24,951 bases of DNA, taken from assembly GCA_002269645.1 (NCBI GenBank), contig NIVC01003409.1:1-24951 (forward strand), given 5' to 3'. The first letter of the stretch is position 1. The number at the start of each line of letters is the position of its first letter. The notes below the pieces were generated by a model, which did not search any database, was not told the DNA's origin, and saw nothing but the letters and a program-made list of their open reading frames with translations. The position numbers were made by a program, and so were the translations under genes. This DNA is from Macrostomum lignano (lineage: Eukaryota). Of this stretch, positions 2,978 to 21,968 are shown piece after piece.

Positions 2978-3208
2978 ATTCTAGAACGAGAAACAAAGCT
3001 TACTGCAAAGGCAAACGCCAAAGAAAAGCAGGGCAGAGTCAGCAACAAAAAAGAAGCTCATCTGATTGGGAAGATGGGCGGTCAGCAAAGAGATAGGATC
3101 TCAGAAAATTGCAACTCCCAGTAACTGAAACTTAATTGCAATAAGTGTTTTGTTTTCTAGGGCATTATTTAAAACAAGCAAGCCTGCCTGCAGTCAGCTA
3201 AGGGCAAA
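2978..3208 (+). CDS. Two candidate exons (~2978-3120 and 3161-3208) joined by a 40-nt intron (3121-3160)
   Basis: Intron GTAACT...TTTTGTTTTCTAG. Splicing removes the in-frame TAA and gives ILERETKLTAKANAKEKQGRVSNKKEAHLIGKMGGQQRDRISENCNSQ-ALFKTSKPACSQLRA. The 48-nt exon is open only in the phase that matches the upstream exon and ends at |GTAAGT. The 5' boundary of the first exon is uncertain. Confidence 0.45.
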
Positions 3209-3422
3209 GTAAGTTGCTGCGGCACTATCGAGAAAGTGAAATTTGTACTCCATCTAACTGACACAAGCAGCACCGTTGGGACAAACTACGAATATTTTAA
3301 TTGTACAGATTTAAATTTTCAGCAATGAAGCATTTATTAGAACAGCGACATTTAAATCTGTTTTCAAACAAATCAGACAGATTTCTCAATAAGTGATTTT
3401 TCTTTTGTGCGCCCACGCACAG

Positions 3423-3605
3423 GTTCGTCCGCATTCAAACTCGCCGCTGCATCCGTCATTTATTCATTGCTGCTCACAAGCCGCAGCAGCAGCAGCAGCA
3501 GCAGCGCTATCCGTGCAGGCAGTCAGTCTATTTGTGAATTTTCTGGTGGATCTGAAGAAAACCCGTCCGGCACAGGATTAAAGAGAAAGAGACGATCTGT
3601 TTTGG
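3423..3605 (+). CDS. First (5'-unique) exon of the array, 183 nt, phase 1-1, poly-Ser version
   Basis: Acceptor TTTTCTTTTGTGCGCCCACGCACAG| (3421-3422), donor G|GTGAGT (3606). Open: xSSAFKLAAASVIYSLLLTSRSSSSSSSAIRAGSQSICEFSGGSEENPSGTGLKRKRRSVL. Confidence 0.55.
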
Positions 3606-5381
3606 GTGAGTATTATCTGCTGTAGAAGTATTGTACACCAGAGTACTTGTGTTACTTGGTAGAGCACAATTCAAAAGCAATGCAACAATCTCAGTGGCAT
3701 TGTTGGGACACAAGCTACAAACGCAATGAATAGTAAACACAGCCCAGCCTAGCTCAAGGCTAGTAATTTGTTGGGCATTTATTGGGACATTGCAGCCAGG
3801 CCTATTTTTTGAACAGCATTTGTTGGGTCGCACTTATTGGGACAATACTGATTCTAATCGCGACTACTTCTGAGTTCTGACTTTTCAAAACAGACCCAGC
3901 ATTAGTTGAACACGTTCTATTAAAGGGTTCCTTTATAGCCTATTAATGATTACTAAAGCAAGCCTATCTTAATTGATTTCTTTTCCTCGCAGATTCTGAA
4001 GTCAGCCACGCCAGCGACATGCCTAAGAGACAAGAATGCGCTTTAACGATCAGCAGCGAGCATTCTGATCTCGCCGCTGCATCCGTCATTTGGTTCACTT
4101 GCTGCTCACAAGCCGCAGCAGCAGCAGCAGCAGCAGCAGCAGCTATCCGTGCAGGCAGTCAGTCTATTTGTGAATTTTCTGGTGGATCTGAAGAAAACCC
4201 GTCCGGCACAGGATTAAAGAGAAAGAGACGATCTGTTTTGGGTGAGTATTATCTGCTGTAGAAGTATTGTACACCAGAGTACTTGTGTTACTTGGTAGAG
4301 CACAATTCAAAAGCAATGCAACAATCTCAGTGGCATTGTTGGGACACAAGCTACAAACGCAATGAATAGTAAACACAGCCCAGCCTAGCTCAAGGCTAGT
4401 AATTTGTTGGGCATTTATTGGGACATTGCAGCCAGGCCTATTTTTTGAACAGCATTTGTTGGGTCGCACTTATTGGGACAATACTGATTCTAATCGCGAC
4501 TACTTCTGAGTTCTGACTTTTCAAAACAGACCCAGCATTAGTTGAACACGTTCTATTAAAGGGTTCCTTTATAGCCTATTAATGATTACTAAAGCAAGCC
4601 TATCTTAATTGATTTCTTTTCCTCGCAGATTCTGAAGTCAGCAACGCCAGCGACATGCCTAAGAGACAAGAATGCGCTTTAACGATCAGCAGCGAGCATT
4701 CTGATCTCGCCGCTGCATCCGTCATTTGGTTCACTTGCTGCTCACAAGCCGCAGCAGCAGCAGCAGCAGCAGCCGCTATCCGTGCAGGCAGTCAGTCTAT
4801 TTGTGAATTTTCTGGTGGATCTGAAGAAAACCCGTCCGGCACAGGATTAAAGAGAAAGAGACGATCTGTTTTGGGTGAGTATTATCTGCTGTAGAAGTAT
4901 TGTACACCAGAGTACTTGTGTTACTTGGTAGAGCACAATTCAAAAGCAATGCAACAATCTCAGTGGCATTGTTGGGACACAAGCTACAAACGCAATGAAT
5001 AGTAAACACAGCCCAGCCTAGCTCAAGGCTAGTAATTTGTTGGGCATTTATTGGGACATTGCAGCCAGGCCTATTTTTTGAACAGCATTTGTTGGGTCGC
5101 ACTTATTGGGACAATACTGATTCTAATCGCGACTACTTCTGAGTTCTGACTTTTCAAAACAGACCCAGCATTAGTTGAACACGTTCTATTAAAGGGTTCC
5201 TTTATAGCCTATTAATGATTACTAAAGCAAGCCTATCTTAATTGATTTCTTTTCCTCGCAGATTCTGAAGTCAGCCACGCCAGCGACATGCCTAAGAGAC
5301 AAGAATGCGCTTTAACGATCAGCAGCGAGCATTCTGATCTCGCCGCTGCATCCGTCATTTGGTTCACTTGCTGCTCACAAG

Positions 5382-5419
<38 letters not shown>

Positions 5420-6026
5420 TATCCGTGCAGGCAGTCAGTCTATTTGTGAATTTTCTGGTGGATCTGAAGAAAACCCGTCCGGCACAGGATTAAAGAGAAA
5501 GAGACGATCTGTTTTGGGTGAGTATTATCTGCTGTAGAAGTATTGTACACCAGAGTACTTGTGTTACTTGGTAGAGCACAATTCAAAAGCAATGCAACAA
5601 TCTCAGTGGCATTGTTGGGACACAAGCTACAAACGCAATGAATAGTAAACACAGCCCAGCCTAGCTCAAGGCTAGTAATTTGTTGGGCATTTATTGGGAC
5701 ATTGCAGCCAGGCCTATTTTTTGAACAGCATTTGTTGGGTCGCACTTATTGGGACAATACTGATTCTAATCGCGACTACTTCTGAGTTCTGACTTTTCAA
5801 AACAGACCCAGCATTAGTTGAACACGTTCTATTAAAGGGTTCCTTTATAGCCTATTAATGATTACTAAAGCAAGCCTATCTTAATTGATTTCTTTTCCTC
5901 GCAGATTCTGAAGTCAGCCACGCCAGCGACATGCCTAAGAGACAAGAATGCGCTTTAACGATCAGCAGCGAGCATTCTGATCTCGCCGCTGCATCCGTCA
6001 TTTGGTTCACTTGCTGCTCACAAGCC

Positions 6027-6068
<42 letters not shown>

Positions 6069-6672
6069 CTATCCGTGCAGGCAGTCAGTCTATTTGTGAA
6101 TTTTCTGGTGGATCTGAAGAAAACCCGTCCGGCACAGGATTAAAGAGAAAGAGACGATCTGTTTTGGGTGAGTATTATCTGCTGTAGAAGTATTGTACAC
6201 CAGAGTACTTGTGTTACTTGGTAGAGCACAATTCAAAAGCAATGCAACAATCTCAGTGGCATTGTTGGGACACAAGCTACAAACGCAATGAATAGTAAAC
6301 ACAGCCCAGCCTAGCTCAAGGCTAGTAATTTGTTGGGCATTTATTGGGACATTGCAGCCAGGCCTATTTTTTGAACAGCATTTGTTGGGTCGCACTTATT
6401 GGGACAATACTGATTCTAATCGCGACTACTTCTGAGTTCTGACTTTTCAAAACAGACCCAGCATTAGTTGAACACGTTCTATTAAAGGGTTCCTTTATAG
6501 CCTATTAATGATTACTAAAGCAAGCCTATCTTAATTGATTTCTTTTCCTCGCAGATTCTGAAGTCAGCACGCCAGCGACATGCCTAAGAGACAAGAATGC
6601 GCTTTAACGATCAGCAGCGAGCATTCTGATCTCGCCGCTGCATCCGTCATTTGGTTCACTTGCTGCTCACAA

Positions 6673-6703
<31 letters not shown>

Positions 6704-8579
6704 CTATCCGTGCAGGCAGTCAGTCTATTTGTGAATTTTCTGGTGGATCTGAAGAAAACCCGTCCGGCACAGGATTAAAGAGAAAGAGACGATCTGTTTT
6801 GGGTGAGTATTATCTGCTGTAGAAGTATTGTACACCAGAGTACTTGTGTTACTTGGTAGAGCACAATTCAAAAGCAATGCAACAATCTCAGTGGCATTGT
6901 TGGGACACAAGCTACAAACGCAATGAATAGTAAACACAGCCCAGCCTAGCTCAAGGCTAGTAATTTGTTGGGCATTTATTGGGACATTGCAGCCAGGCCT
7001 ATTTTTTGAACAGCATTTGTTGGGTCGCACTTATTGGGACAATACTGATTCTAATCGCGACTACTTCTGAGTTCTGACTTTTCAAAACAGACCCAGCATT
7101 AGTTGAACACGTTCTATTAAAGGGTTCCTTTATAGCCTATTAATGATTACTAAAGCAAGCCTATCTTAATTGATTTCTTTTCCTCGCAGATTCTGAAGTC
7201 AGCCACGCCAGCGACATGCCTAAGAGACAAGAATGCGCTTTAACGATCAGCAGCGAGCATTCTGATCTCGCCGCTGCATCCGTCATTTGGTTCACTTGCT
7301 GCTCACAAGCCGCAGCAGCAGCAGCAGCAGCAGCAGCTATCCGTGCAGGCAGTCAGTCTATTTGTGAATTTTCTGGTGGATCTGAAGAAAACCCGTCCGG
7401 CACAGGATTAAAGAGAAAGAGACGATCTGTTTTGGGTGAGTATTATCTGCTGTAGAAGTATTGTACACCAGAGTACTTGTGTTACTTGGTAGAGCACAAT
7501 TCAAAAGCAATGCAACAATCTCAGTGGCATTGTTGGGACACAAGCTACAAACGCAATGAATAGTAAACACAGCCCAGCCTAGCTCAAGGCTAGTAATTTG
7601 TTGGGCATTTATTGGGACATTGCAGCCAGGCCTATTTTTTGAACAGCATTTGTTGGGTCGCACTTATTGGGACAATACTGATTCTAATCGCGACTACTTC
7701 TGAGTTCTGACTTTTCAAAACAGACCCAGCATTAGTTGAACACGTTCTATTAAAGGGTTCCTTTATAGCCTATTAATGATTACTAAAGCAAGCCTATCTT
7801 AATTGATTTCTTTTCCTCGCAGATTCTGAAGTCAGCCACGCCAGCGACATGCCTAAGAGACAAGAATGCGCTTTAACGATCAGCAGCGAGCATTCTGATC
7901 TCGCCGCTGCATCCGTCATTTGGTTCACTTGCTGCTCACAAGCCGCAGCAGCAGCAGCAGCAGCAGCAGCGCTATCCGTGCAGGCAGTCAGTCTATTTGT
8001 GAATTTTCTGGTGGATCTGAAGAAAACCCGTCCGGCACAGGATTAAAGAGAAAGAGACGATCTGTTTTGGGTGAGTATTATCTGCTGTAGAAGTATTGTA
8101 CACCAGAGTACTTGTGTTACTTGGTAGAGCACAATTCAAAAGCAATGCAACAATCTCAGTGGCATTGTTGGGACACAAGCTACAAACGCAATGAATAGTA
8201 AACACAGCCCAGCCTAGCTCAAGGCTAGTAATTTGTTGGGCATTTATTGGGACATTGCAGCCAGGCCTATTTTTTGAACAGCATTTGTTGGGTCGCACTT
8301 ATTGGGACAATACTGATTCTAATCGCGACTACTTCTGAGTTCTGACTTTTCAAAACAGACCCAGCATTAGTTGAACACGTTCTATTAAAGGGTTCCTTTA
8401 TAGCCTATTAATGATTACTAAAGCAAGCCTATCTTAATTGATTTCTTTTCCTCGCAGATTCTGAAGTCAGCCACGCCAGCGACATGCCTAAGAGACAAGA
8501 ATGCGCTTTAACGATCAGCAGCGAGCATTCTGATCTCGCCGCTGCATCCGTCATTTGGTTCACTTGCTGCTCACAAGCC

Positions 8580-8611
<32 letters not shown>

Positions 8612-9854
8612 TATCCGTGCAGGCAGTCAGTCTATTTGTGAATTTTCTGGTGGATCTGAAGAAAACCCGTCCGGCACAGGATTAAAGAGAAAGAGACGAT
8701 CTGTTTTGGGTGAGTATTATCTGCTGTAGAAGTATTGTACACCAGAGTACTTGTGTTACTTGGTAGAGCACAATTCAAAAGCAATGCAACAATCTCAGTG
8801 GCATTGTTGGGACACAAGCTACAAACGCAATGAATAGTAAACACAGCCCAGCCTAGCTCAAGGCTAGTAATTTGTTGGGCATTTATTGGGACATTGCAGC
8901 CAGGCCTATTTTTTGAACAGCATTTGTTGGGTCGCACTTATTGGGACAATACTGATTCTAATCGCGACTACTTCTGAGTTCTGACTTTTCAAAACAGACC
9001 CAGCATTAGTTGAACACGTTCTATTAAAGGGTTCCTTTATAGCCTATTAATGATTACTAAAGCAAGCCTATCTTAATTGATTTCTTTTCCTCGCAGATTC
9101 TGAAGTCAGCCACGCCAGCGACATGCCTAAGAGACAAGAATGCGCTTTAACGATCAGCAGCGAGCATTCTGATCTCGCCGCTGCATCCGTCATTTGGTTC
9201 ACTTGCTGCTCACAAGCCGCAGCAGCAGCAGCAGCAGCAGCAGCAGCTATCCGTGCAGGCAGTCAGTCTATTTGTGAATTTTCTGGTGGATCTGAAGAAA
9301 ACCCGTCCGGCACAGGATTAAAGAGAAAGAGACGATCTGTTTTGGGTGAGTATTATCTGCTGTAGAAGTATTGTACACCAGAGTACTTGTGTTACTTGGT
9401 AGAGCACAATTCAAAAGCAATGCAACAATCTCAGTGGCATTGTTGGGACACAAGCTACAAACGCAATGAATAGTAAACACAGCCCAGCCTAGCTCAAGGC
9501 TAGTAATTTGTTGGGCATTTATTGGGACATTGCAGCCAGGCCTATTTTTTGAACAGCATTTGTTGGGTCGCACTTATTGGGACAATACTGATTCTAATCG
9601 CGACTACTTCTGAGTTCTGACTTTTCAAAACAGACCCAGCATTAGTTGAACACGTTCTATTAAAGGGTTCCTTTATAGCCTATTAATGATTACTAAAGCA
9701 AGCCTATCTTAATTGATTTCTTTTCCTCGCAGATTCTGAAGTCAGCCACGCCAGCGACATGCCTAAGAGACAAGAATGCGCTTTAACGATCAGCAGCGAG
9801 CATTCTGATCTCGCCGCTGCATCCGTCATTTGGTTCACTTGCTGCTCACAAGCC

Positions 9855-9886
<32 letters not shown>

Positions 9887-10496
9887 TATCCGTGCAGGCA
9901 GTCAGTCTATTTGTGAATTTTCTGGTGGATCTGAAGAAAACCCGTCCGGCACAGGATTAAAGAGAAAGAGACGATCTGTTTTGGGTGAGTATTATCTGCT
10001 GTAGAAGTATTGTACACCAGAGTACTTGTGTTACTTGGTAGAGCACAATTCAAAAGCAATGCAACAATCTCAGTGGCATTGTTGGGACACAAGCTACAAA
10101 CGCAATGAATAGTAAACACAGCCCAGCCTAGCTCAAGGCTAGTAATTTGTTGGGCATTTATTGGGACATTGCAGCCAGGCCTATTTTTTGAACAGCATTT
10201 GTTGGGTCGCACTTATTGGGACAATACTGATTCTAATCGCGACTACTTCTGAGTTCTGACTTTTCAAAACAGACCCAGCATTAGTTGAACACGTTCTATT
10301 AAAGGGTTCCTTTATAGCCTATTAATGATTACTAAAGCAAGCCTATCTTAATTGATTTCTTTTCCTCGCAGATTCTGAAGTCAGCCACGCCAGCGACATG
10401 CCTAAGAGACAAGAATGCGCTTTAACGATCAGCAGCGAGCATTCTGATCTCGCCGCTGCATCCGTCATTTGGCTGCTCACTTGCTGCTCACAAGCC

Positions 10497-10532
<36 letters not shown>

Positions 10533-13500
10533 AGCTATCCGTGCAGGCAGTCAGTCTATTTGTCTTTTCTGTGAATGGATCTGAAGAAAACCCGTCCGGC
10601 ACAGGATTAAAGAGAAAGAGACGATCTGTTTTGGGTGAGTATTATCTGCTGTAGAAGTATTGTACACCAGAGTACTTGTGTTACTTGGTAGAGCACAATT
10701 CAAAAGCAATGCAACAATCTCAGTGGCATTGTTGGGACACAAGCTACAAACGCAATGAATAGTAAACACAGCCCAGCCTAGCTCAAGGCTAGTAATTTGT
10801 TGGGCATTTATTGGGACATTGCAGCCAGGCCTATTTTTTGAACAGCATTTGTTGGGTCGCACTTATTGGGACAATACTGATTCTAATCGCGACTACTTCT
10901 GAGTTCTGACTTTTCAAAACAGACCCAGCATTAGTTGAACACGTTCTATTAAAGGGTTCCTTTATAGCCTATTAATGATTACTAAAGCAAGCCTATCTTA
11001 ATTGATTTCTTTTCCTCGCAGATTCTGAAGTCAGCCACGCCAGCGACATGCCTAAGAGACAAGAATGCGCTTTAACGATCAGCAGCGAGCATTCTGATCT
11101 CGCCGCTGCATCCGTCATTTGGTTCACTTGCTGCTCACAAGCCGCAGCAGCAGCAGCAGCAGCAGCAGCAGCTATCCGTGCAGGCAGTCAGTCTATTTGT
11201 GAATTTTCTGGTGGATCTGAAGAAAACCCGTCCGGCACAGGATTAAAGAGAAAGAGACGATCTGTTTTGGGTGAGTATTATCTGCTGTAGAAGTATTGTA
11301 CACCAGAGTACTTGTGTTACTTGGTAGAGCACAATTCAAAAGCAATGCAACAATCTCAGTGGCATTGTTGGGACACAAGCTACAAACGCAATGAATAGTA
11401 AACACAGCCCAGCCTAGCTCAAGGCTAGTAATTTGTTGGGCATTTATTGGGACATTGCAGCCAGGCCTATTTTTTGAACAGCATTTGTTGGGTCGCACTT
11501 ATTGGGACAATACTGATTCTAATCGCGACTACTTCTGAGTTCTGACTTTTCAAAACAGACCCAGCATTAGTTGAACACGTTCTATTAAAGGGTTCCTTTA
11601 TAGCCTATTAATGATTACTAAAGCAAGCCTATCTTAATTGATTTCTTTTCCTCGCAGATTCTGAAGTCAGCCACGCCAGCGACATGCCTAAGAGACAAGA
11701 ATGCGCTTTAACGATCAGCAGCGAGCATTCTGATCTCGCCGCTGCATCCGTCATTTGGTTCACTTGCTGCTCACAAGCCGCAGCAGCAGCAGCAGCAGCA
11801 GCAGCGCTATCCGTGCAGGCAGTCAGTCTATTTGTGAATTTTCTGGTGGATCTGAAGAAAACCCGTCCGGCACAGGATTAAAGAGAAAGAGACGATCTGT
11901 TTTGGGTGAGTATTATCTGCTGTAGAAGTATTGTACACCAGAGTACTTGTGTTACTTGGTAGAGCACAATTCAAAAGCAATGCAACAATCTCAGTGGCAT
12001 TGTTGGGACACAAGCTACAAACGCAATGAATAGTAAACACAGCCCAGCCTAGCTCAAGGCTAGTAATTTGTTGGGCATTTATTGGGACATTGCAGCCAGG
12101 CCTATTTTTTGAACAGCATTTGTTGGGTCGCACTTATTGGGACAATACTGATTCTAATCGCGACTACTTCTGAGTTCTGACTTTTCAAAACAGACCCAGC
12201 ATTAGTTGAACACGTTCTATTAAAGGGTTCCTTTATAGCCTATTAATGATTACTAAAGCAAGCCTATCTTAATTGATTTCTTTTCCTCGCAGATTCTGAA
12301 GTCAGCCACGCCAGCGACATGCCTAAGAGACAAGAATGCGCTTTAACGATCAGCAGCGAGCATTCTGATCTCGCCGCTGCATCCGTCATTTGGTTCACTT
12401 GCTGCTCACAAGCCGCAGCAGCAGCAGCAGCAGCAGCAGCAGCTATCCGTGCAGGCAGTCAGTCTATTTGTGAATTTTCTGGTGGATCTGAAGAAAACCC
12501 GTCCGGCACAGGATTAAAGAGAAAGAGACGATCTGTTTTGGGTGAGTATTATCTGCTGTAGAAGTATTGTACACCAGAGTACTTGTGTTACTTGGTAGAG
12601 CACAATTCAAAAGCAATGCAACAATCTCAGTGGCATTGTTGGGACACAAGCTACAAACGCAATGAATAGTAAACACAGCCCAGCCTAGCTCAAGGCTAGT
12701 AATTTGTTGGGCATTTATTGGGACATTGCAGCCAGGCCTATTTTTTGAACAGCATTTGTTGGGTCGCACTTATTGGGACAATACTGATTCTAATCGCGAC
12801 TACTTCTGAGTTCTGACTTTTCAAAACAGACCCAGCATTAGTTGAACACGTTCTATTAAAGGGTTCCTTTATAGCCTATTAATGATTACTAAAGCAAGCC
12901 TATCTTAATTGATTTCTTTTCCTCGCAGATTCTGAAGTCAGCCACGCCAGCGACATGCCTAAGAGACAAGAATGCGCTTTAACGATCAGCAGCGAGCATT
13001 CTGATCTCGCCGCTGCATCCGTCATTTGGTTCACTTGCTGCTCACAAGCCGCAGCAGCAGCAGCAGCAGCAGCAGCAGCTATCCGTGCAGGCAGTCAGTC
13101 TATTTGTGAATTTTCTGGTGGATCTGAAGAAAACCCGTCCGGCACAGGATTAAAGAGAAAGAGACGATCTGTTTTGGGTGAGTATTATCTGCTGTAGAAG
13201 TATTGTACACCAGAGTACTTGTGTTACTTGGTAGAGCACAATTCAAAAGCAATGCAACAATCTCAGTGGCATTGTTGGGACACAAGCTACAAACGCAATG
13301 AATAGTAAACACAGCCCAGCCTAGCTCAAGGCTAGTAATTTGTTGGGCATTTATTGGGACATTGCAGCCAGGCCTATTTTTTGAACAGCATTTGTTGGGT
13401 CGCACTTATTGGGACAATACTGATTCTAATCGCGACTACTTCTGAGTTCTGACTTTTCAAAACAGACCCAGCATTAGTTGAACACGTTCTATTAAAGGGT

Positions 13501-16500
13501 TCCTTTATAGCCTATTAATGATTACTAAAGCAAGCCTATCTTAATTGATTTCTTTTCCTCGCAGATTCTGAAGTCAGCCACGCCAGCGACATGCCTAAGA
13601 GACAAGAATGCGCTTTAACGATCAGCAGCGAGCATTCTGATCTCGCCGCTGCATCCGTCATTTGGTTCACTTGCTGCTCACAAGCCGCAGCAGCAGCAGC
13701 AGCAGCAGCAGCAGCTATCCGTGCAGGCAGTCAGTCTATTTGTGAATTTTCTGGTGGATCTGAAGAAAACCCGTCCGGCACAGGATTAAAGAGAAAGAGA
13801 CGATCTGTTTTGGGTGAGTATTATCTGCTGTAGAAGTATTGTACACCAGAGTACTTGTGTTACTTGGTAGAGCACAATTCAAAAGCAATGCAACAATCTC
13901 AGTGGCATTGTTGGGACACAAGCTACAAACGCAATGAATAGTAAACACAGCCCAGCCTAGCTCAAGGCTAGTAATTTGTTGGGCATTTATTGGGACATTG
14001 CAGCCAGGCCTATTTTTTGAACAGCATTTGTTGGGTCGCACTTATTGGGACAATACTGATTCTAATCGCGACTACTTCTGAGTTCTGACTTTTCAAAACA
14101 GACCCAGCATTAGTTGAACACGTTCTATTAAAGGGTTCCTTTATAGCCTATTAATGATTACTAAAGCAAGCCTATCTTAATTGATTTCTTTTCCTCGCAG
14201 ATTCTGAAGTCAGCCACGCCAGCGACATGCCTAAGAGACAAGAATGCGCTTTAACGATCAGCAGCGAGCATTCTGATCTCGCCGCTGCATCCGTCATTTG
14301 GTTCACTTGCTGCTCACAAGCCGCAGCAGCAGCAGCAGCAGCAGCAGCAGCTATCCGTGCAGGCAGTCAGTCTATTTGTGAATTTTCTGGTGGATCTGAA
14401 GAAAACCCGTCCGGCACAGGATTAAAGAGAAAGAGACGATCTGTTTTGGGTGAGTATTATCTGCTGTAGAAGTATTGTACACCAGAGTACTTGTGTTACT
14501 TGGTAGAGCACAATTCAAAAGCAATGCAACAATCTCAGTGGCATTGTTGGGACACAAGCTACAAACGCAATGAATAGTAAACACAGCCCAGCCTAGCTCA
14601 AGGCTAGTAATTTGTTGGGCATTTATTGGGACATTGCAGCCAGGCCTATTTTTTGAACAGCATTTGTTGGGTCGCACTTATTGGGACAATACTGATTCTA
14701 ATCGCGACTACTTCTGAGTTCTGACTTTTCAAAACAGACCCAGCATTAGTTGAACACGTTCTATTAAAGGGTTCCTTTATAGCCTATTAATGATTACTAA
14801 AGCAAGCCTATCTTAATTGATTTCTTTTCCTCGCAGATTCTGAAGTCAGCCACGCCAGCGACATGCCTAAGAGACAAGAATGCGCTTTAACGATCAGCAG
14901 CGAGCATTCTGATCTCGCCGCTGCATCCGTCATTTGGTTCACTTGCTGCTCACAAGCCGCAGCAGCAGCAGCAGCAGCAGCTATCCGTGCAGGCAGTCAG
15001 TCTATTTGTGAATTTTCTGGTGGATCTGAAGAAAACCCGTCCGGCACAGGATTAAAGAGAAAGAGACGATCTGTTTTGGGTGAGTATTATCTGCTGTAGA
15101 AGTATTGTACACCAGAGTACTTGTGTTACTTGGTAGAGCACAATTCAAAAGCAATGCAACAATCTCAGTGGCATTGTTGGGACACAAGCTACAAACGCAA
15201 TGAATAGTAAACACAGCCCAGCCTAGCTCAAGGCTAGTAATTTGTTGGGCATTTATTGGGACATTGCAGCCAGGCCTATTTTTTGAACAGCATTTGTTGG
15301 GTCGCACTTATTGGGACAATACTGATTCTAATCGCGACTACTTCTGAGTTCTGACTTTTCAAAACAGACCCAGCATTAGTTGAACACGTTCTATTAAAGG
15401 GTTCCTTTATAGCCTATTAATGATTACTAAAGCAAGCCTATCTTAATTGATTTCTTTTCCTCGCAGATTCTGAAGTCAGCCACGCCAGCGACATGCCTAA
15501 GAGACAAGAATGCGCTTTAACGATCAGCAGCGAGCATTCTGATCTCGCCGCTGCATCCGTCATTTGGTTCACTTGCTGCTCACAAGCCGCAGCAGCAGCA
15601 GCAGCAGCTATCCGTGCAGGCAGTCAGTCTATTTGTGAATTTTCTGGTGGATCTGAAGAAAACCCGTCCGGCACAGGATTAAAGAGAAAGAGACGATCTG
15701 TTTTGGGTGAGTATTATCTGCTGTAGAAGTATTGTACACCAGAGTACTTGTGTTACTTGGTAGAGCACAATTCAAAAGCAATGCAACAATCTCAGTGGCA
15801 TTGTTGGGACACAAGCTACAAACGCATGAATAGTAAACACAGCCCAGCCTAGCTCAAGGCTAGTAATTTGTTGGGCATTTATTGGGACATTGCAGCCAGG
15901 CCTATTTTTTGAACAGCATTTGTTGGGTCGCACTTATTGGGACAATACTGATTCTAATCGCGACTACTTCTGAGTTCTGACTTTTCAAAACAGACCCAGC
16001 ATTAGTTGAACACGTTCTATTAAAGGGTTCCTTTATAGCCTATTAATGATTACTAAAGCAAGCCTATCTTAATTGATTTCTTTTCCTCGCAGATTCTGAA
16101 GTCAGCCACGCCAGCGACATGCCTAAGAGACAAGAATGCGCTTTAACGATCAGCAGCGAGCATTCTGATCTCGCCGCTGCATCCGTCATTTGGTTCACTT
16201 GCTGCTCACAAGCCGCAGCAGCAGCAGCAGCAGCAGCAGCAGCGCTATCCGTGCAGGCAGTCAGTCTATTTGTGAATTTTCTGGTGGATCTGAAGAAAAC
16301 CCGTCCGGCACAGGATTAAAGAGAAAGAGACGATCTGTTTTGGGTGAGTATTATCTGCTGTAGAAGTATTGTACACCAGAGTACTTGTGTTACTTGGTAG
16401 AGCACAATTCAAAAGCAATGCAACAATCTCAGTGGCATTGTTGGGACACAAGCTACAAACGCAATGAATAGTAAACACAGCCCAGCCTAGCTCAAGGCTA

Positions 16501-18114
16501 GTAATTTGTTGGGCATTTATTGGGACATTGCAGCCAGGCCTATTTTTTGAACAGCATTTGTTGGGTCGCACTTATTGGGACAATACTGATTCTAATCGCG
16601 ACTACTTCTGAGTTCTGACTTTTCAAAACAGACCCAGCATTAGTTGAACACGTTCTATTAAAGGGTTCCTTTATAGCCTATTAATGATTACTAAAGCAAG
16701 CCTATCTTAATTGATTTCTTTTCCTCGCAGATTCTGAAGTCAGCCACGCCAGCGACATGCCTAAGAGACAAGAATGCGCTTTAACGATCAGCAGCGAGCA
16801 TTCTGATCTCGCCGCTGCATCCGTCATTTGGTTCACTTGCTGCTCACAAGCCGCAGCAGCAGCAGCAGCAGCTATCCGTGCAGGCAGTCAGTCTATTTGT
16901 GAATTTTCTGGTGGATCTGAAGAAAACCCGTCCGGCACAGGATTAAAGAGAAAGAGACGATCTGTTTTGGGTGAGTATTATCTGCTGTAGAAGTATTGTA
17001 CACCAGAGTACTTGTGTTACTTGGTAGAGCACAATTCAAAAGCAATGCAACAATCTCAGTGGCATTGTTGGGACACAAGCTACAAACGCATTGAATAGTA
17101 AACACAGCCCAGCCTAGCTCAAGGCTAGTAATTTGTTGGGCATTTATTGGGACATTGCAGCCAGGCCTATTTTTTGAACAGCATTTGTTGGGTCGCACTT
17201 ATTGGGACAATACTGATTCTAATCGCGACTACTTCTGAGTTCTGACTTTTCAAAACAGACCCAGCATTAGTTGAACACGTTCTATTAAAGGGTTCCTTTA
17301 TAGCCTATTAATGATTACTAAAGCAAGCCTATCTTAATTGATTTCTTTTCCTCGCAGATTCTGAAGTCAGCCACGCCAGCGACATGCCTAAGAGACAAGA
17401 ATGCGCTTTAACGATCAGCAGCGAGCATTCTGATCTCGCCGCTGCATCCGTCATTTGGTTCACTTGCTGCTCACTTGCTGCTCACAAGCCGCAGCAGCAG
17501 CAGCCGCTATCCGTGCAGGCAGTCAGTCTCTTTGTGAATTTTCTGGTGGATCTGAAGAAAACCCGTCCGGCACAGGATTAAAGAGAAAGAGACGATCTGT
17601 TTTGGGTGAGTATTATCTGCTGTAGAAGTATTGTACACCAGAGTACTTGTGTTACTTGGTAGAGCACAATTGAAAAGCAATGCAACAATCTCAGTGGCAT
17701 TGTTGGGACACAAGCTACAAACGCATTGAATAGTAAACACAGCCCAGCCTAGCTCAAGGCTAGTAATTTGTTGGGCATTTATTGGGACATTGCAGCCAGG
17801 CCTATTTTTTGAACAGCATTTGTTGGGTCGCACTTATTGGGACAATACTGATTCTAATCGCGACTACTTCTGAGTTCTGACTTTTCAAAACAGACCCAGC
17901 ATTAGTTGAACACGTTCTATTAAAGGGTTCCTTTATAGCCTATTAATGATTACTAATGCAAGCCTATCTTAATTGATTTCTTTTCCTCGCAGATTCTGAA
18001 GTCAGCAACGCCAGCGACATGCCTAAGAGACAAGAATGCGCTTTAACGATCAGCAGCGAGCATTCTGATCTCGCCGCTGCATCCGTCATTTGGTTCACTT
18101 GCTGCTCACAAGCC

Positions 18115-18153
<39 letters not shown>

Positions 18154-18174
18154 GCTATCTGTGCAGCAGTCAGT
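3440..18174 (+). repeat. Tandem array of ~636-bp units (23 complete + 1 partial), each one exon plus one intron, with an internal variable (GCA)n tract
   Basis: The same 101-aa antisense ORF recurs at 3528, 4164, 4797 ... 17507 (23 times, spacing ~615-650). Units are near-identical except at and around the CAG tract (about 4-13 triplets). Confidence 0.98.
3993..4241 (+). CDS. Representative repeated symmetric exon (copy 2; 249 nt, phase 1-1). Further copies start at 4629, 5262, 5905, 6555, 7190, 7823, 8458, 9097, 9733, 10372, 11022, 11658, 12293, 12929, 13565, 14201, 14837, 15467, 16093, 16731, 17358
   Basis: Branch-like TACTAAA, then TTGATTTCTTTTCCTCGCAG|AT ... TTG G|GTGAGT. G+AT gives Asp, so copies splice in frame: DSEVSHASDMPKRQECALTISSEHSDLAAASVIWFTCCSQ(A)nIRAGSQSICEFSGGSEENPSGTGLKRKRRSVL. 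The intron is 387 nt (4242-4628). Confidence 0.6.
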
Positions 18175-18177
18175 TAA
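17993..18177 (+). CDS. Last (3'-unique) terminal coding exon of the array
   Basis: Same acceptor and 5' half as the middle copies. It then diverges after the (GCA)12 tract: ...SQAAAAAAAAAAAAAAAICAAVS* (TAA 18175-18177). No GTGAGT donor follows. Confidence 0.5.
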
Positions 18178-18297
18178 TTCATGAGTTTTTTGGCGGAGCT
18201 GGTTATTTTTTTAATTTTCTGAATCGAGAAGCCGATTAACTGCTGTGTGCTTCACTGGAATATTATTTAGAGGACGCATTTTTTGCAGTCTGTTTCT

Positions 18298-18303
18298 AAT
18301 AAA
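18298..18303 (+). promoter_or_regulatory. Candidate polyadenylation signal AATAAA for the exon-array gene
   Basis: AATAAA about 120 nt after the terminal-exon stop. The hexamer alone is weak evidence in AT-rich DNA. Confidence 0.35.
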
Positions 18304-18380
18304 ATCCGGTGCAATGACCGCGGTAGAGCTCTAGCATTTGCTTTTTATAGTATTTGTGTATATTCTTTTTCAAGCTATGC

Positions 18381-18629
18381 TGGAATTGTTGGGACAGCCC
18401 TATCCACACTGGCTATGGTGGAATTGTTGGGACAGCCCTATCCACACTGGCTATGGTTGAATTGTTGGGACAGCCCTATCCACACTGGCTATGGTGGAAT
18501 TGTTGGGACAGCCCTATCCACACTGGCTATGGTTGAATTGTTGGGACAGCCCTATCCACACTGGCTATGGTGGAATTGTTGGGACAGCCCTATCCACACT
18601 GGCTATGGTGAAATTGTTGGGACAGCCCC
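18381..18629 (+). repeat. 38-bp minisatellite, ~6.5 copies (TGGAATTGTTGGGACAGCCCTATCCACACTGGCTATGG)
   Basis: Units start at 18381, 18419, 18457, 18495, 18533, 18571, 18609. First triplets are TGG,TGG,TTG,TGG,TTG,TGG,TGA. Confidence 0.95.
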
Positions 18630-19249: not shown

Positions 19250-19765
<516 letters not shown>

Positions 19766-20650: not shown

Positions 20651-21968
20651 GAATCTTGTTCATTAATGAACAACCGATTCACCAACCGTGCCAATCAAAG
20701 AGTCGCCGATTCACCAATCTTGTCATTCTAAGAGTCGCCGATTCACCAATCTTGTCATTCAAAGAGTCACCGATTCACCAATCTTGTCATTCTAAGAGTC
20801 ACCGATTCACCAATCTTGCCAACCAAAGAGTCACAGATTCACCAATCTCGTCATTCAAAGAGTCGCCGATTCACCAATCTTGTCATTCAAAGAGTCGCCG
20901 ATTCACCAATCTTGTCATTCAAAGAGTCGCCAATTCACCAATCTTGTCATTCAAAGAGTCACCGATTCACCAATCTTGTCATTCAAAGAGTCGCCGATTC
21001 ACCAATCTTGTCATTCAAAGAGCCGCCGATTCACCAATCTTGTCATTCAAAGAGTCGCCGATTCACCAATCTTGTCAACCAAAGAGTCACCGATTCACCA
21101 ATCTTGTCATTCAAGAGTCGCCGATTCACCAATCTTGTCATTCAAAGAGTCGCCGATTCACCAATCTTGTCATTCAAAGAGTCACCGATTCACCAATCTT
21201 GTCATTCAAAGAGTCGCCGATTCACCAATCTTGTCATTCAAAGAGTCACTGATTCACCAATCTTGTTATTCAAAGAGTCGCCGATTCACCAATCTTGTCA
21301 TTCAAAGAGTCGCCGATTCACCAATCTTGTCAACCAAAGAGTCGCCGATTCACCTATCTTGTCATTCAAAGAGTCGCCGATTCACCAATCTTGTCATTCA
21401 AAGTGTCGCAGATTCACCAATCTTGTCATTCAAAGAGCCGCCGATTCACCAATCTTGTCATTCAAAGAGTCGCCAATTCACCAATCTTGTCATTCAAAGA
21501 GTCGCCGATTCACCAATCTTGTCATTCAAAGAGTCACCGATTCACCAATCTTGTCATTCAAAGAGTCACTGATTCACCAATCTTGTTATTCAAAGAGTCG
21601 TCGATTCACCAATCTTGTCATTCAAAGAGTCGCCGATTCACCAATCTTGTCAACCAAAGAGTCACCGATTCACCAATCTTGTCATTCAAAGAGTCGCCGA
21701 TTCACCAATTTTGTCAACCAAAGAGTCGCCGATTCACCTATTGTGTCATTCAAAGAGTCGCCGATTCACCAATCTTGTCATTCAAAGAGTCACTGATTCA
21801 CCAATCTTGTTATTCAAAGAGTCGTCGATTCACCTATCGTGTCATTCAAAGAGTCGCCGATTCACCAATCTTGTCAACCAAAGAGTCACCGATTCACCAA
21901 TCTTGTCCTTTAGACTGCTTTATTAGCTCTCCCATTCAGCGAGCCTCTGATTCACCAATCCTGTCATT
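20651..21968 (+). repeat. 32-bp tandem satellite, ~40 copies (ATTCAAAGAGTCGCCGATTCACCAATCTTGTC), degenerate at both ends
   Basis: Period 32 (e.g. 20761 to 20793). The core runs ~20673-21907. It generates the overlapping KESPIHQSCHSKSRRFTNLVIQRVADSPILSF ORFs in all three plus frames. Confidence 0.97.

Follow-up and report, generated by a model that had tools for sequence, protein, structure and literature searches.

A tandem array of 636-bp exon-intron cassettes in Macrostomum lignano: variable copy number and probable concerted evolution

We analyzed positions 1 to 24,951 of the forward strand of Macrostomum lignano contig NIVC01003409.1 (NCBI GenBank assembly GCA_002269645.1), a stretch of 24,951 nucleotides referred to below as the window, in which one short exon and its intron are repeated head to tail. 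The array is probably a copy-number-variable tandem series of 636-bp exon-intron cassettes under concerted evolution, in a gene confined to M. lignano. It is an established dynamic array and not an exon birth nucleated by a microsatellite.

Layout of the array and its repeat unit

Twenty-four exon copies were found on the + strand of the window between position 3423 and about position 18300, with a period of 626 to 650 bp (typically ~636 bp); the anchor sequence CTCGCCGCTGCATCCGTCATTT was counted 24 times across the window. All 23 donors (TTTTGG/GTGAGT; slashes mark exon boundaries here and below) are identical, and so are all 23 acceptors, which consist of a polypyrimidine stretch followed by CGCAG/ATTCTGAAG. 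Head-to-tail units with a complete exon, an intron, and canonical splice sites are present in the window. Every exon contains a (GCA)6-14 tract, read as poly-Ala in the only long open frame, and this tract accounts for the period-3 rows reported by Tandem Repeats Finder and for most of the differences in spacing. With the tract set aside, 16 of the 23 anchor-to-anchor units equal the consensus, and more private changes were found in the units next to the ends (u1, u2, u20, u22, and u23) than in interior units. The parts of the array are as follows.

3423..3605, + strand: first copy, 183 nt, with its own acceptor (cacag/GTTCG), 8 private nt, a diverged left core, the tract at 3483-3505, and the standard 3' half
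3606..3992, + strand: first of 23 standard introns (387 nt, GTGAGT...CGCAG), each with three TTGGGAC motifs
3993..17605, + strand: 22 middle exons (240 to 263 nt, phase 1-1) plus introns
17993..18177, + strand: last copy, with the standard 5' half, the tract at 18115-18153, and a diverged 3' part

The array amounts to 23 full periods plus a shared core of ~110-135 nt (~44 nt, the tract, and ~47 nt). Since it begins and ends inside this same short core, the middle exons necessarily consist of the 5' half of the last copy and the 3' half of the first copy, a structure that holds for any array of N periods plus a shared core. A first-pass annotation of the window had described copies 2 to 23 as such chimeras of the two terminal exons, and this composition was confirmed in the window. 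It had also called the outer halves of the terminal copies unique, which they are not: the 5' half of copy 1 is homologous to the standard exon from position 3431 onward, and the 3' half of copy 24 is 78% identical to it as far as position 18201.

Two copies carry local rearrangements. Copy 12 (10449-10634) has a small scramble in which TTTGTCTTTTCTGTGAATGG replaces TTTGTGAATTTTCTGGTGG, together with a 3-nt insertion, and copy 23 (17460-17485) has an 11-nt tandem duplication (TCACTTGCTGC, 2.4 copies) to the left of a short tract.

Copy number differs among syntenic loci with near-identical flanks

The genome of M. lignano is that of a hidden tetraploid, the sequenced line also carries extra large chromosomes (PMC5704211), and the assembly Mlig_3_7 is redundant (PMC5730564); homeologous or extra-chromosome copies are therefore to be expected. 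Four sister loci syntenic with the window, L001 to L004, were taken from assembly GCA_002269645.1.

L003: flanks 98.9% identical to the window, 11 copies, complete array
L002: flanks 97.3% identical to the window, at least 17 copies, array runs off the contig end
L001: flanks 95.8% identical to the window, 8 copies, complete array
L004: flanks 96.0% identical to the window, at least 5 copies, array cut by unrelated DNA at L004:11384

Copy number thus differs between loci (24 in the window and 11, 8, at least 17, and at least 5 in L003, L001, L002, and L004, respectively) while the flanks stay 96-99% identical. The syntenic loci, five or more in number, represent homeologues or extra copies of a chromosome. 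All five open with the same first-type exon, cacag/GTTC(G/A)TCCGCATTCAAA, and both complete sister arrays (L001 and L003) close with the last-type exon of the window, CAGTCAGTTAATT. The un-expanded two-exon allele that the first-pass annotation had envisaged was absent among the five loci. A search for the 22-nt anchor in JGI metagenome contigs gave no matches.

In L004, the array is broken inside an intron at position 11384 by unrelated sequence that reaches the contig end; this break could be an insertion, perhaps of a mobile element, or an assembly join. According to the gene table, the minus strand of L003 (1-20371) has a gene model of 981 residues, with a TIR_2 domain, that encloses the whole array; the array may accordingly lie in an intron of an antisense gene. 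None of the exons of this model aligns to the window.

Probable homogenization of units within loci, up to the outer parts of the terminal copies

Units differ by 0.4-1.0% inside one locus and by 0.6-1.5% between loci, and the distance matrix of units yielded 8 diagnostic columns between loci, as concerted evolution predicts. Sites fixed by locus include cag/ATTCTG..AGCCAC in the window and L003, where L001, L002, and L004 have cag/CTTCTG..AGCAAC, and a T in 23 of 23 window units at a position occupied by C elsewhere. The locus-specific states extend into the inner halves of the terminal copies, which therefore take part in homogenization; the outer ~45 nt do not. These outer parts lie within the core.

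3431..3474, + strand: outer-left core, homologous to the standard exon, not homogenized
18156..18201, + strand: outer-right core, 78% identical to the standard 3' half (TATCTGTGCA-GCAGTCAGTTAATTCATGAGTTTTTTGGCGGAGCTG)

From the tract to the end of intron 1, copy 1 is 100% identical to the standard sequence. Its alignment to the standard exon on the left side of the tract begins with GCATTC at 3431 (score, 78 by local alignment, compared with 20 +/- 2 for shuffles), 9 nt farther left than the shared block given by the first-pass annotation. The outer-left core has GCATTC-AAA where the standard exon has GCATTCTGAT and AT where it has GG, and it carries a 2-nt deletion present only in the window. 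Compared with L003, copy 1 (3461-3505) lacks these 2 nt, which lie left of the tract, and 1 nt more at the right tract edge, a total of -3; the tract of copy 1 is read in a different frame, and the frame is regained on both sides. Copy 24 continues after the tract with GCTATCTGTGCAGCAGTCAGTTAA and reaches a TAA stop (18175-18177) in the poly-Ala frame. Its homology to the standard exon runs 46-47 nt past the tract, to 18201 (z = 10 versus shuffles). The two outer core parts diverge from the standard exon by ~11% and ~22%, compared with differences of 1-4% among the loci themselves.

Alignments of the window flanks showed no significant unit homology to the left of 3431 or to the right of 18201, and a search of these flanks for degenerate exon copies gave nothing significant; a look-alike at 3160-3209 was rejected for this reason. 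The upstream flank has no homology to the intron (z = 0.2; P = 0.27). An apparent homology between the downstream flank and the intron, seen as a k-mer diagonal signal, was traced to a 38-bp minisatellite, and semiglobal alignment without the minisatellite was not significant (P = 0.07).

Switch points between terminal and standard sequence shift from locus to locus

The right edge of the tract in the window reads GCAGCTATC in 14 copies, GCAGCGCTATC in 6 (copies 1, 5, 6, 8, 14, and 21), and GCAGCCGCTATC in 3 (copies 3, 23, and 24), with one other form. In L001 to L004, it reads GCCGCTATC in 41 of 41 copies, all four first copies included; GCAGCTATC and GCAGCGCTATC were seen in the window only and lie 3 nt and 1 nt away, respectively, from the GCCGCTATC form. 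The three edge types reported by the first-pass annotation hence exist in the window, but their use as ancestral markers of copies 1 and 24 fails, since the sister loci are all of the GCCGCTATC type.

In the window, the interval from the last first-copy-specific site to the first last-copy-specific site comprises ~12-16 nt, the tract, and then 6 nt, and the window alone cannot place a crossover inside the tract. The sister loci provide further switch points. ATTT-AT-TTCAC is found in the first copies of the window, L002, and L003, and the standard GG takes the place of AT in those of L001 and L004. AT is ancestral by parsimony, since the three loci that have it represent both flank lineages. 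In L001 and L004, first-copy sequence has given way to standard sequence as far as the 22-nt anchor, which lies left of the tract at a distance of more than 20 nt. The last copy of L001 is standard through CTATCCGTG..GGCAGTCAGT (about +20 nt) and last-copy-specific only afterward, and the last copies of the window and L003 depart from the standard already at +6. The L003 last copy is also off-standard to the left of the tract (GCCAAGCT versus CACAAGCC). The position of the switch thus varies, with L001, L003, and L004 having it outside the tract, and a crossover inside the CAG tract is not supported. We also considered whether an A in the middle units of L002 (TTTAG) had spread from its first copy (TTTAT); the neighboring base is mismatched, and an independent G-to-A change is no less likely.

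The array is transcribed and spliced, and its matches are confined to M. lignano

Protein matches were found exclusively in M. lignano, both by a word-indexed search of 5.8 billion proteins and by an exhaustive search of 1.84 billion representatives; neither search yielded a homologue in another species. One candidate, P0029, was rejected as an unrelated repeat protein with 30% identity. The NCBI models P0001, P0004, and P0008 join consecutive exons at SVL/(A/D)SEVS, which matches conceptual splicing exactly, and the Mlig_3_7 annotation was made from RNA sequencing data with StringTie/TACO and TransDecoder (PMC5730564). These transcript-based NCBI models show that the array is transcribed and that it is spliced at the GT-AG sites read in the sequence.

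The UniProt fragments use all three frames (poly-Ala, poly-Gln, and poly-Ser), alternative donors (GGCA/gtcagt and AACCC/gtccgg), and an alternative acceptor (atcagcag/CGAGC), which indicates that splicing is real but noisy. Fragment models begin exactly at the first codon of exon 1, with VRPHSNS or VHPHSNS. These start points suggest spliced-leader trans-splicing at the exon 1 acceptor; the M. lignano spliced leader ends in ATG (PMC8629364).

A second array family has the same first, standard, and last exons

The exhaustive search also retrieved P0030 (UniProt A0A1I8FV09), and with it its cluster mate P0031 (A0A1I8HX90), which represent a second M. lignano array family with a unit ~55% identical to that of the window (ASKVSNASDMPKREDSTSTINSEHSDIADALATSCLLAAQEQQQTLLMQTGCSQSIDDLSCGAKDNSSGKGLKRKRRSVL). 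No NCBI-annotated member of this family was found. It has its own first-type, standard, and last-type exons. The first-type exon diverges to the left of TINSEHSD, ~25 residues before the tract equivalent, and the last-type exon diverges right after QEQQQTL, with a tail, GAGFFIVSES, that resembles GRAGYFLSF in the last copy of L001. The tract itself is degenerate in this family (AAQEQQQTLLMQ). As the first/standard/last layout is common to both families, it predates their split, unless it arose twice. The window is not a snapshot of exon birth: the same terminal exons are found at all loci with complete ends, and the same layout in a family only ~55% identical.

Between the families, the segment GLKRKRRSVL/AS(E/K)VSNASDMPKR is conserved at 22 of 23 positions, compared with ~40% elsewhere. 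Gaps between the families are whole codons, and the homologous frame is open for ~80 codons in both, with ~45% of residues differing.

Coding potential of the units

The poly-Ala frame specifies a module of 80-85 residues, (D)SEVSHASDMPKRQECALTISSEHSDLAAASVIWFTCCSQ(A)nIRAGSQSICEFSGGSEENPSGTGLKRKRRSVL, on phase 1-1 exons and is intact in 7 of 8 exons of L001 and in 10 of 11 exons of L003. No Pfam domain scored above threshold (best noise, e.g., Bd3614_N with 20 bits versus a cut-off of 25). No Rfam match was obtained at an E value of ≤1 on one unit or at the gathering score on the whole window, and the intron folded no better than shuffled sequence (z = -0.55). There is no in-frame ATG upstream of exon 1, and the first in-frame Met lies in exon 2. 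Some models are labeled "Secreted protein" in UniProt. The sequences of the two families reveal a conserved peptide flanked by dibasic sites, with diverged spacers. It is uncertain whether the units are protein coding; if translated, the poly-Ala frame would give a repetitive polypeptide in which a conserved 14-residue segment, SVL(A/D)SEVS(N/H)ASDMP, would be flanked by RKRR and KR sites.

A minus-strand open reading frame (ORF) of 101 codons recurs in every unit (first at 3528-3833), spanning the intron and the 3' end of the exon. It found no database support and was taken as incidental.

Origin and maintenance of the array

Unequal exchange and gene conversion between misaligned 636-bp units would expand, contract, and homogenize each array, and the length of the (GCA)n tract would also shift by slippage. 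Exchange can be expected to stop where homology stops; the outermost ~45 nt of both terminal copies, which border unrelated DNA, would mostly escape homogenization and drift, and for that reason internal exons would look like the 5' half of the last copy joined to the 3' half of the first. The simplest origin, given that the array is 23 periods plus a ~110-135-nt core, would be an exchange between two older short paralogous segments ~636 bp apart. The outer cores are far more diverged from the standard exon than the loci are from each other, which fits such a start. The exchange would then predate the divergence of the five loci and probably also the split from the second, ~55% identical family; it cannot be placed inside the trinucleotide tract.

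The first-pass annotation had arrived at a related scheme, in which the (GCA)n/(CAG)n tracts of two older paralogous exons paired out of register and a single crossover within the tract produced a hybrid that was amplified recently. Two older paralogous exons that exchanged are compatible with the diverged outer cores; what lacks support is the tract as the site, the edge variants as markers, and the recency. The geometry does suit an in-tract event (23 periods plus a tract-containing core with old, diverged outer parts), the tract fills more than half of the uninformative interval of the window, and the last copy of the second family departs from the standard immediately after the tract equivalent QEQQQTL. 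Against this, the switch points lie outside the tract in L001 (both sides), L004 (left), and the L003 last copy (left), and the first copy of the second family switches ~25 residues to the left of it. The edge types are specific to the window, with the 41 sister copies uniform, and a recent birth is at odds with the lack of a two-exon state at the five loci and with a layout shared by the second family. We regard this scheme as improbable. Less improbable, although still doubtful, is that the terminal copies are eroded or truncated ends, i.e., that a longer array was cut arbitrarily or a block of units was inserted, after which the terminal copies drifted, with no two-exon ancestor at all. Any cut array equals N units plus a fraction, and terminal copies that are the most diverged are a usual edge effect; the excess of private changes in u1, u2, u20, u22, and u23 points the same way, as does a weak collinear signal, TTGTTGGGAC, located downstream of the last copy at about its intron distance. 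However, the scheme needs both breaks to lie no more than ~50 nt from the same tract, for which the chance in a unit of 636 nt is roughly a few percent, and no significant homology to the intron or to the remainder of the exon exists outside the core on either the right or the left side (P = 0.07 and 0.27).

Several observations weigh against the dynamic cassette array that we propose, or against details of that proposal, and the evidence on coding is conflicting. Eight of the 22 middle exons of the window (copies 4, 5, 6, 8, 12, 14, 21, and 23) have lengths that are not multiples of 3 (those of the other 14 are), so that the concatenated reading frame is broken in this assembly. Among the 16 middle units of L002 (2526-11318), 12 carry a TGG-to-TAG change (TTTGGTTCAC to TTTAGTTCAC), as does one unit of L004 (9218); read in the poly-Ala frame, it is a stop codon, and it has spread through the L002 array. 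Exon differences between loci are mostly nonsynonymous. The gene models are spread over all three frames, with several alternative splice sites, and translation from the ATG of the spliced leader would be in frame 0 and would end within exon 1. For near-identical repeats such as these, a long-read assembly may be wrong in copy number and in 1-nt variants; all that is known of the second family comes from proteins predicted in another assembly; and the ancestral state (two short cores, or a longer array truncated on both sides) is deduced solely from array geometry.

Part of these observations would be accommodated by a noncoding reading, which is compatible with the concerted array we favor: the array would be a transcribed, noisily spliced macrosatellite whose open frame is incidental. 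We give this reading somewhat less than an even chance. The frameshifted exons and the stops in L002 and L004 speak for it, as do the similar divergence of exon and intron between loci (3 diagnostic sites per 249 nt and 5 per 387 nt, respectively), the use of three frames with two alternative donors and one alternative acceptor, and the lack of a Pfam domain and of any homologue outside M. lignano in the searches described above. It does not readily explain why a homologous frame has stayed open for ~80 codons in two families ~45% apart with gaps of whole codons, why the segment that spans the dibasic sites was kept at 22 of 23 positions, or why the exons are symmetric (phase 1-1) and the indels of the window first copy add up to -3. 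If the units are instead coding, the array might be a Macrostomum-specific multicopy precursor of the 14-residue peptide, cut at RKRR/KR, with dose set by cassette number (3-fold between homeologues) and with the array seeded by exchange of two short tract-containing cores whose tract came from a signal-peptide-like exon; we offer this as a speculation that is unlikely to hold in full. On the same speculative reading, the first/standard/last architecture, conserved in two families that differ at ~45% of residues, may mark a real Macrostomum-specific gene type. A host gene for small RNAs like SNORD115/116 or C19MC, in which each intron delivers a small nucleolar RNA or a microRNA, has a similar build (spliced head-to-tail repeats, each made of an intron and a short exon with little coding capacity). 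With no Rfam match and an intron that does not fold like a structured RNA, this explanation is hardly credible here.

Comparison with known repeat systems

A close parallel to the cassette array is kringle IV type 2 (KIV-2) of the human LPA gene, where head-to-tail exon-intron cassettes inside a gene are near identical including their introns, copy number varies widely between alleles through unequal exchange, and older, diverged paralogous copies at the flanks are not homogenized. The LPA unit is 5.5 kb long and has two exons, a well-defined kringle domain, and an intact frame; the M. lignano unit measures 636 bp and has one ~249-nt exon with a trinucleotide tract, no recognizable domain, and a doubtful frame. 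Hybrids of the Lepore type and the haptoglobin Hp2 type share the composition of the internal copy, with the 5' part from the downstream parent and the 3' part from the upstream parent. For these hybrids, parental and recombinant alleles are known and the breakpoint has been mapped, whereas the five M. lignano loci yielded no two-copy parental allele, and later conversion has obscured the breakpoint.

Ribosomal DNA, satellites, and the coding minisatellites of mucins and involucrin likewise show higher identity within than between arrays, fixation by locus, and terminal repeats that are the most diverged. Unlike in these arrays, each M. lignano unit is a complete spliced exon plus intron, so that repeat number changes the number of exons and not the length of a single exon. 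Neuropeptide and antimicrobial polyproteins with dibasic sites resemble the putative product in that a short conserved segment between RKRR and KR is repeated and the spacers are less conserved. In contrast to such precursors, the M. lignano units have no amidation glycine, a long hydrophobic stretch in each spacer, and many frameshifts and stops, and neither an N-terminal start codon nor a signal peptide could be defined.

The array provides a natural example of near-identical homeologues in a recent polyploid that differ in exon number, from 8 to 24, and of homogenization that enters the terminal copies but stops short of passing through them. It also illustrates how array geometry alone can mimic the story of a chimeric exon. 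For M. lignano genomics, this repeat family breaks gene models and gives rise to many UniProt fragments in three frames, and the copy number and 1-nt variants of the array call for long-read validation.

Repeats and signals flanking the array

Two features lie directly beyond the last copy.

18298..18303, + strand: AATAAA, a candidate poly(A) signal read from the sequence, ~120 nt past the last-copy stop
18374..18628, + strand: 38-bp minisatellite, 6.7 copies, directly downstream of the array

The core of this minisatellite, GTGGAATTGTTGGGACA, equals an intron motif at 16 of 17 positions, and the minisatellite may be a remnant of intron-like sequence. The 7-mer TTGGGAC occurs 79 times in the window, compared with 1.9 expected. 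It is found three times per intron (3703-17843), together with two near-variants, once per unit of the 38-bp minisatellite (18389-18623), and also at 997, 3276, and 19194 (minus strand). Its sharing between intron and minisatellite may reflect common minisatellite ancestry or a motif that is common in the M. lignano genome.

Farther downstream, a 32-bp minisatellite (CCGATTCACCAATCTTGTCATTCAAAGAGTCG; 38.6 copies, 92% identity) occupies 20674-21907 and yields long spurious ORFs. It could not be aligned to L003, where a different long minisatellite sits at the corresponding place. A (GACA)n microsatellite at 1-313 and its reverse complement, (TGTC)n, at 19251-19765 form an inverted pair that brackets the locus, and the alignment of the window to L003 and L001 ends at these microsatellites.

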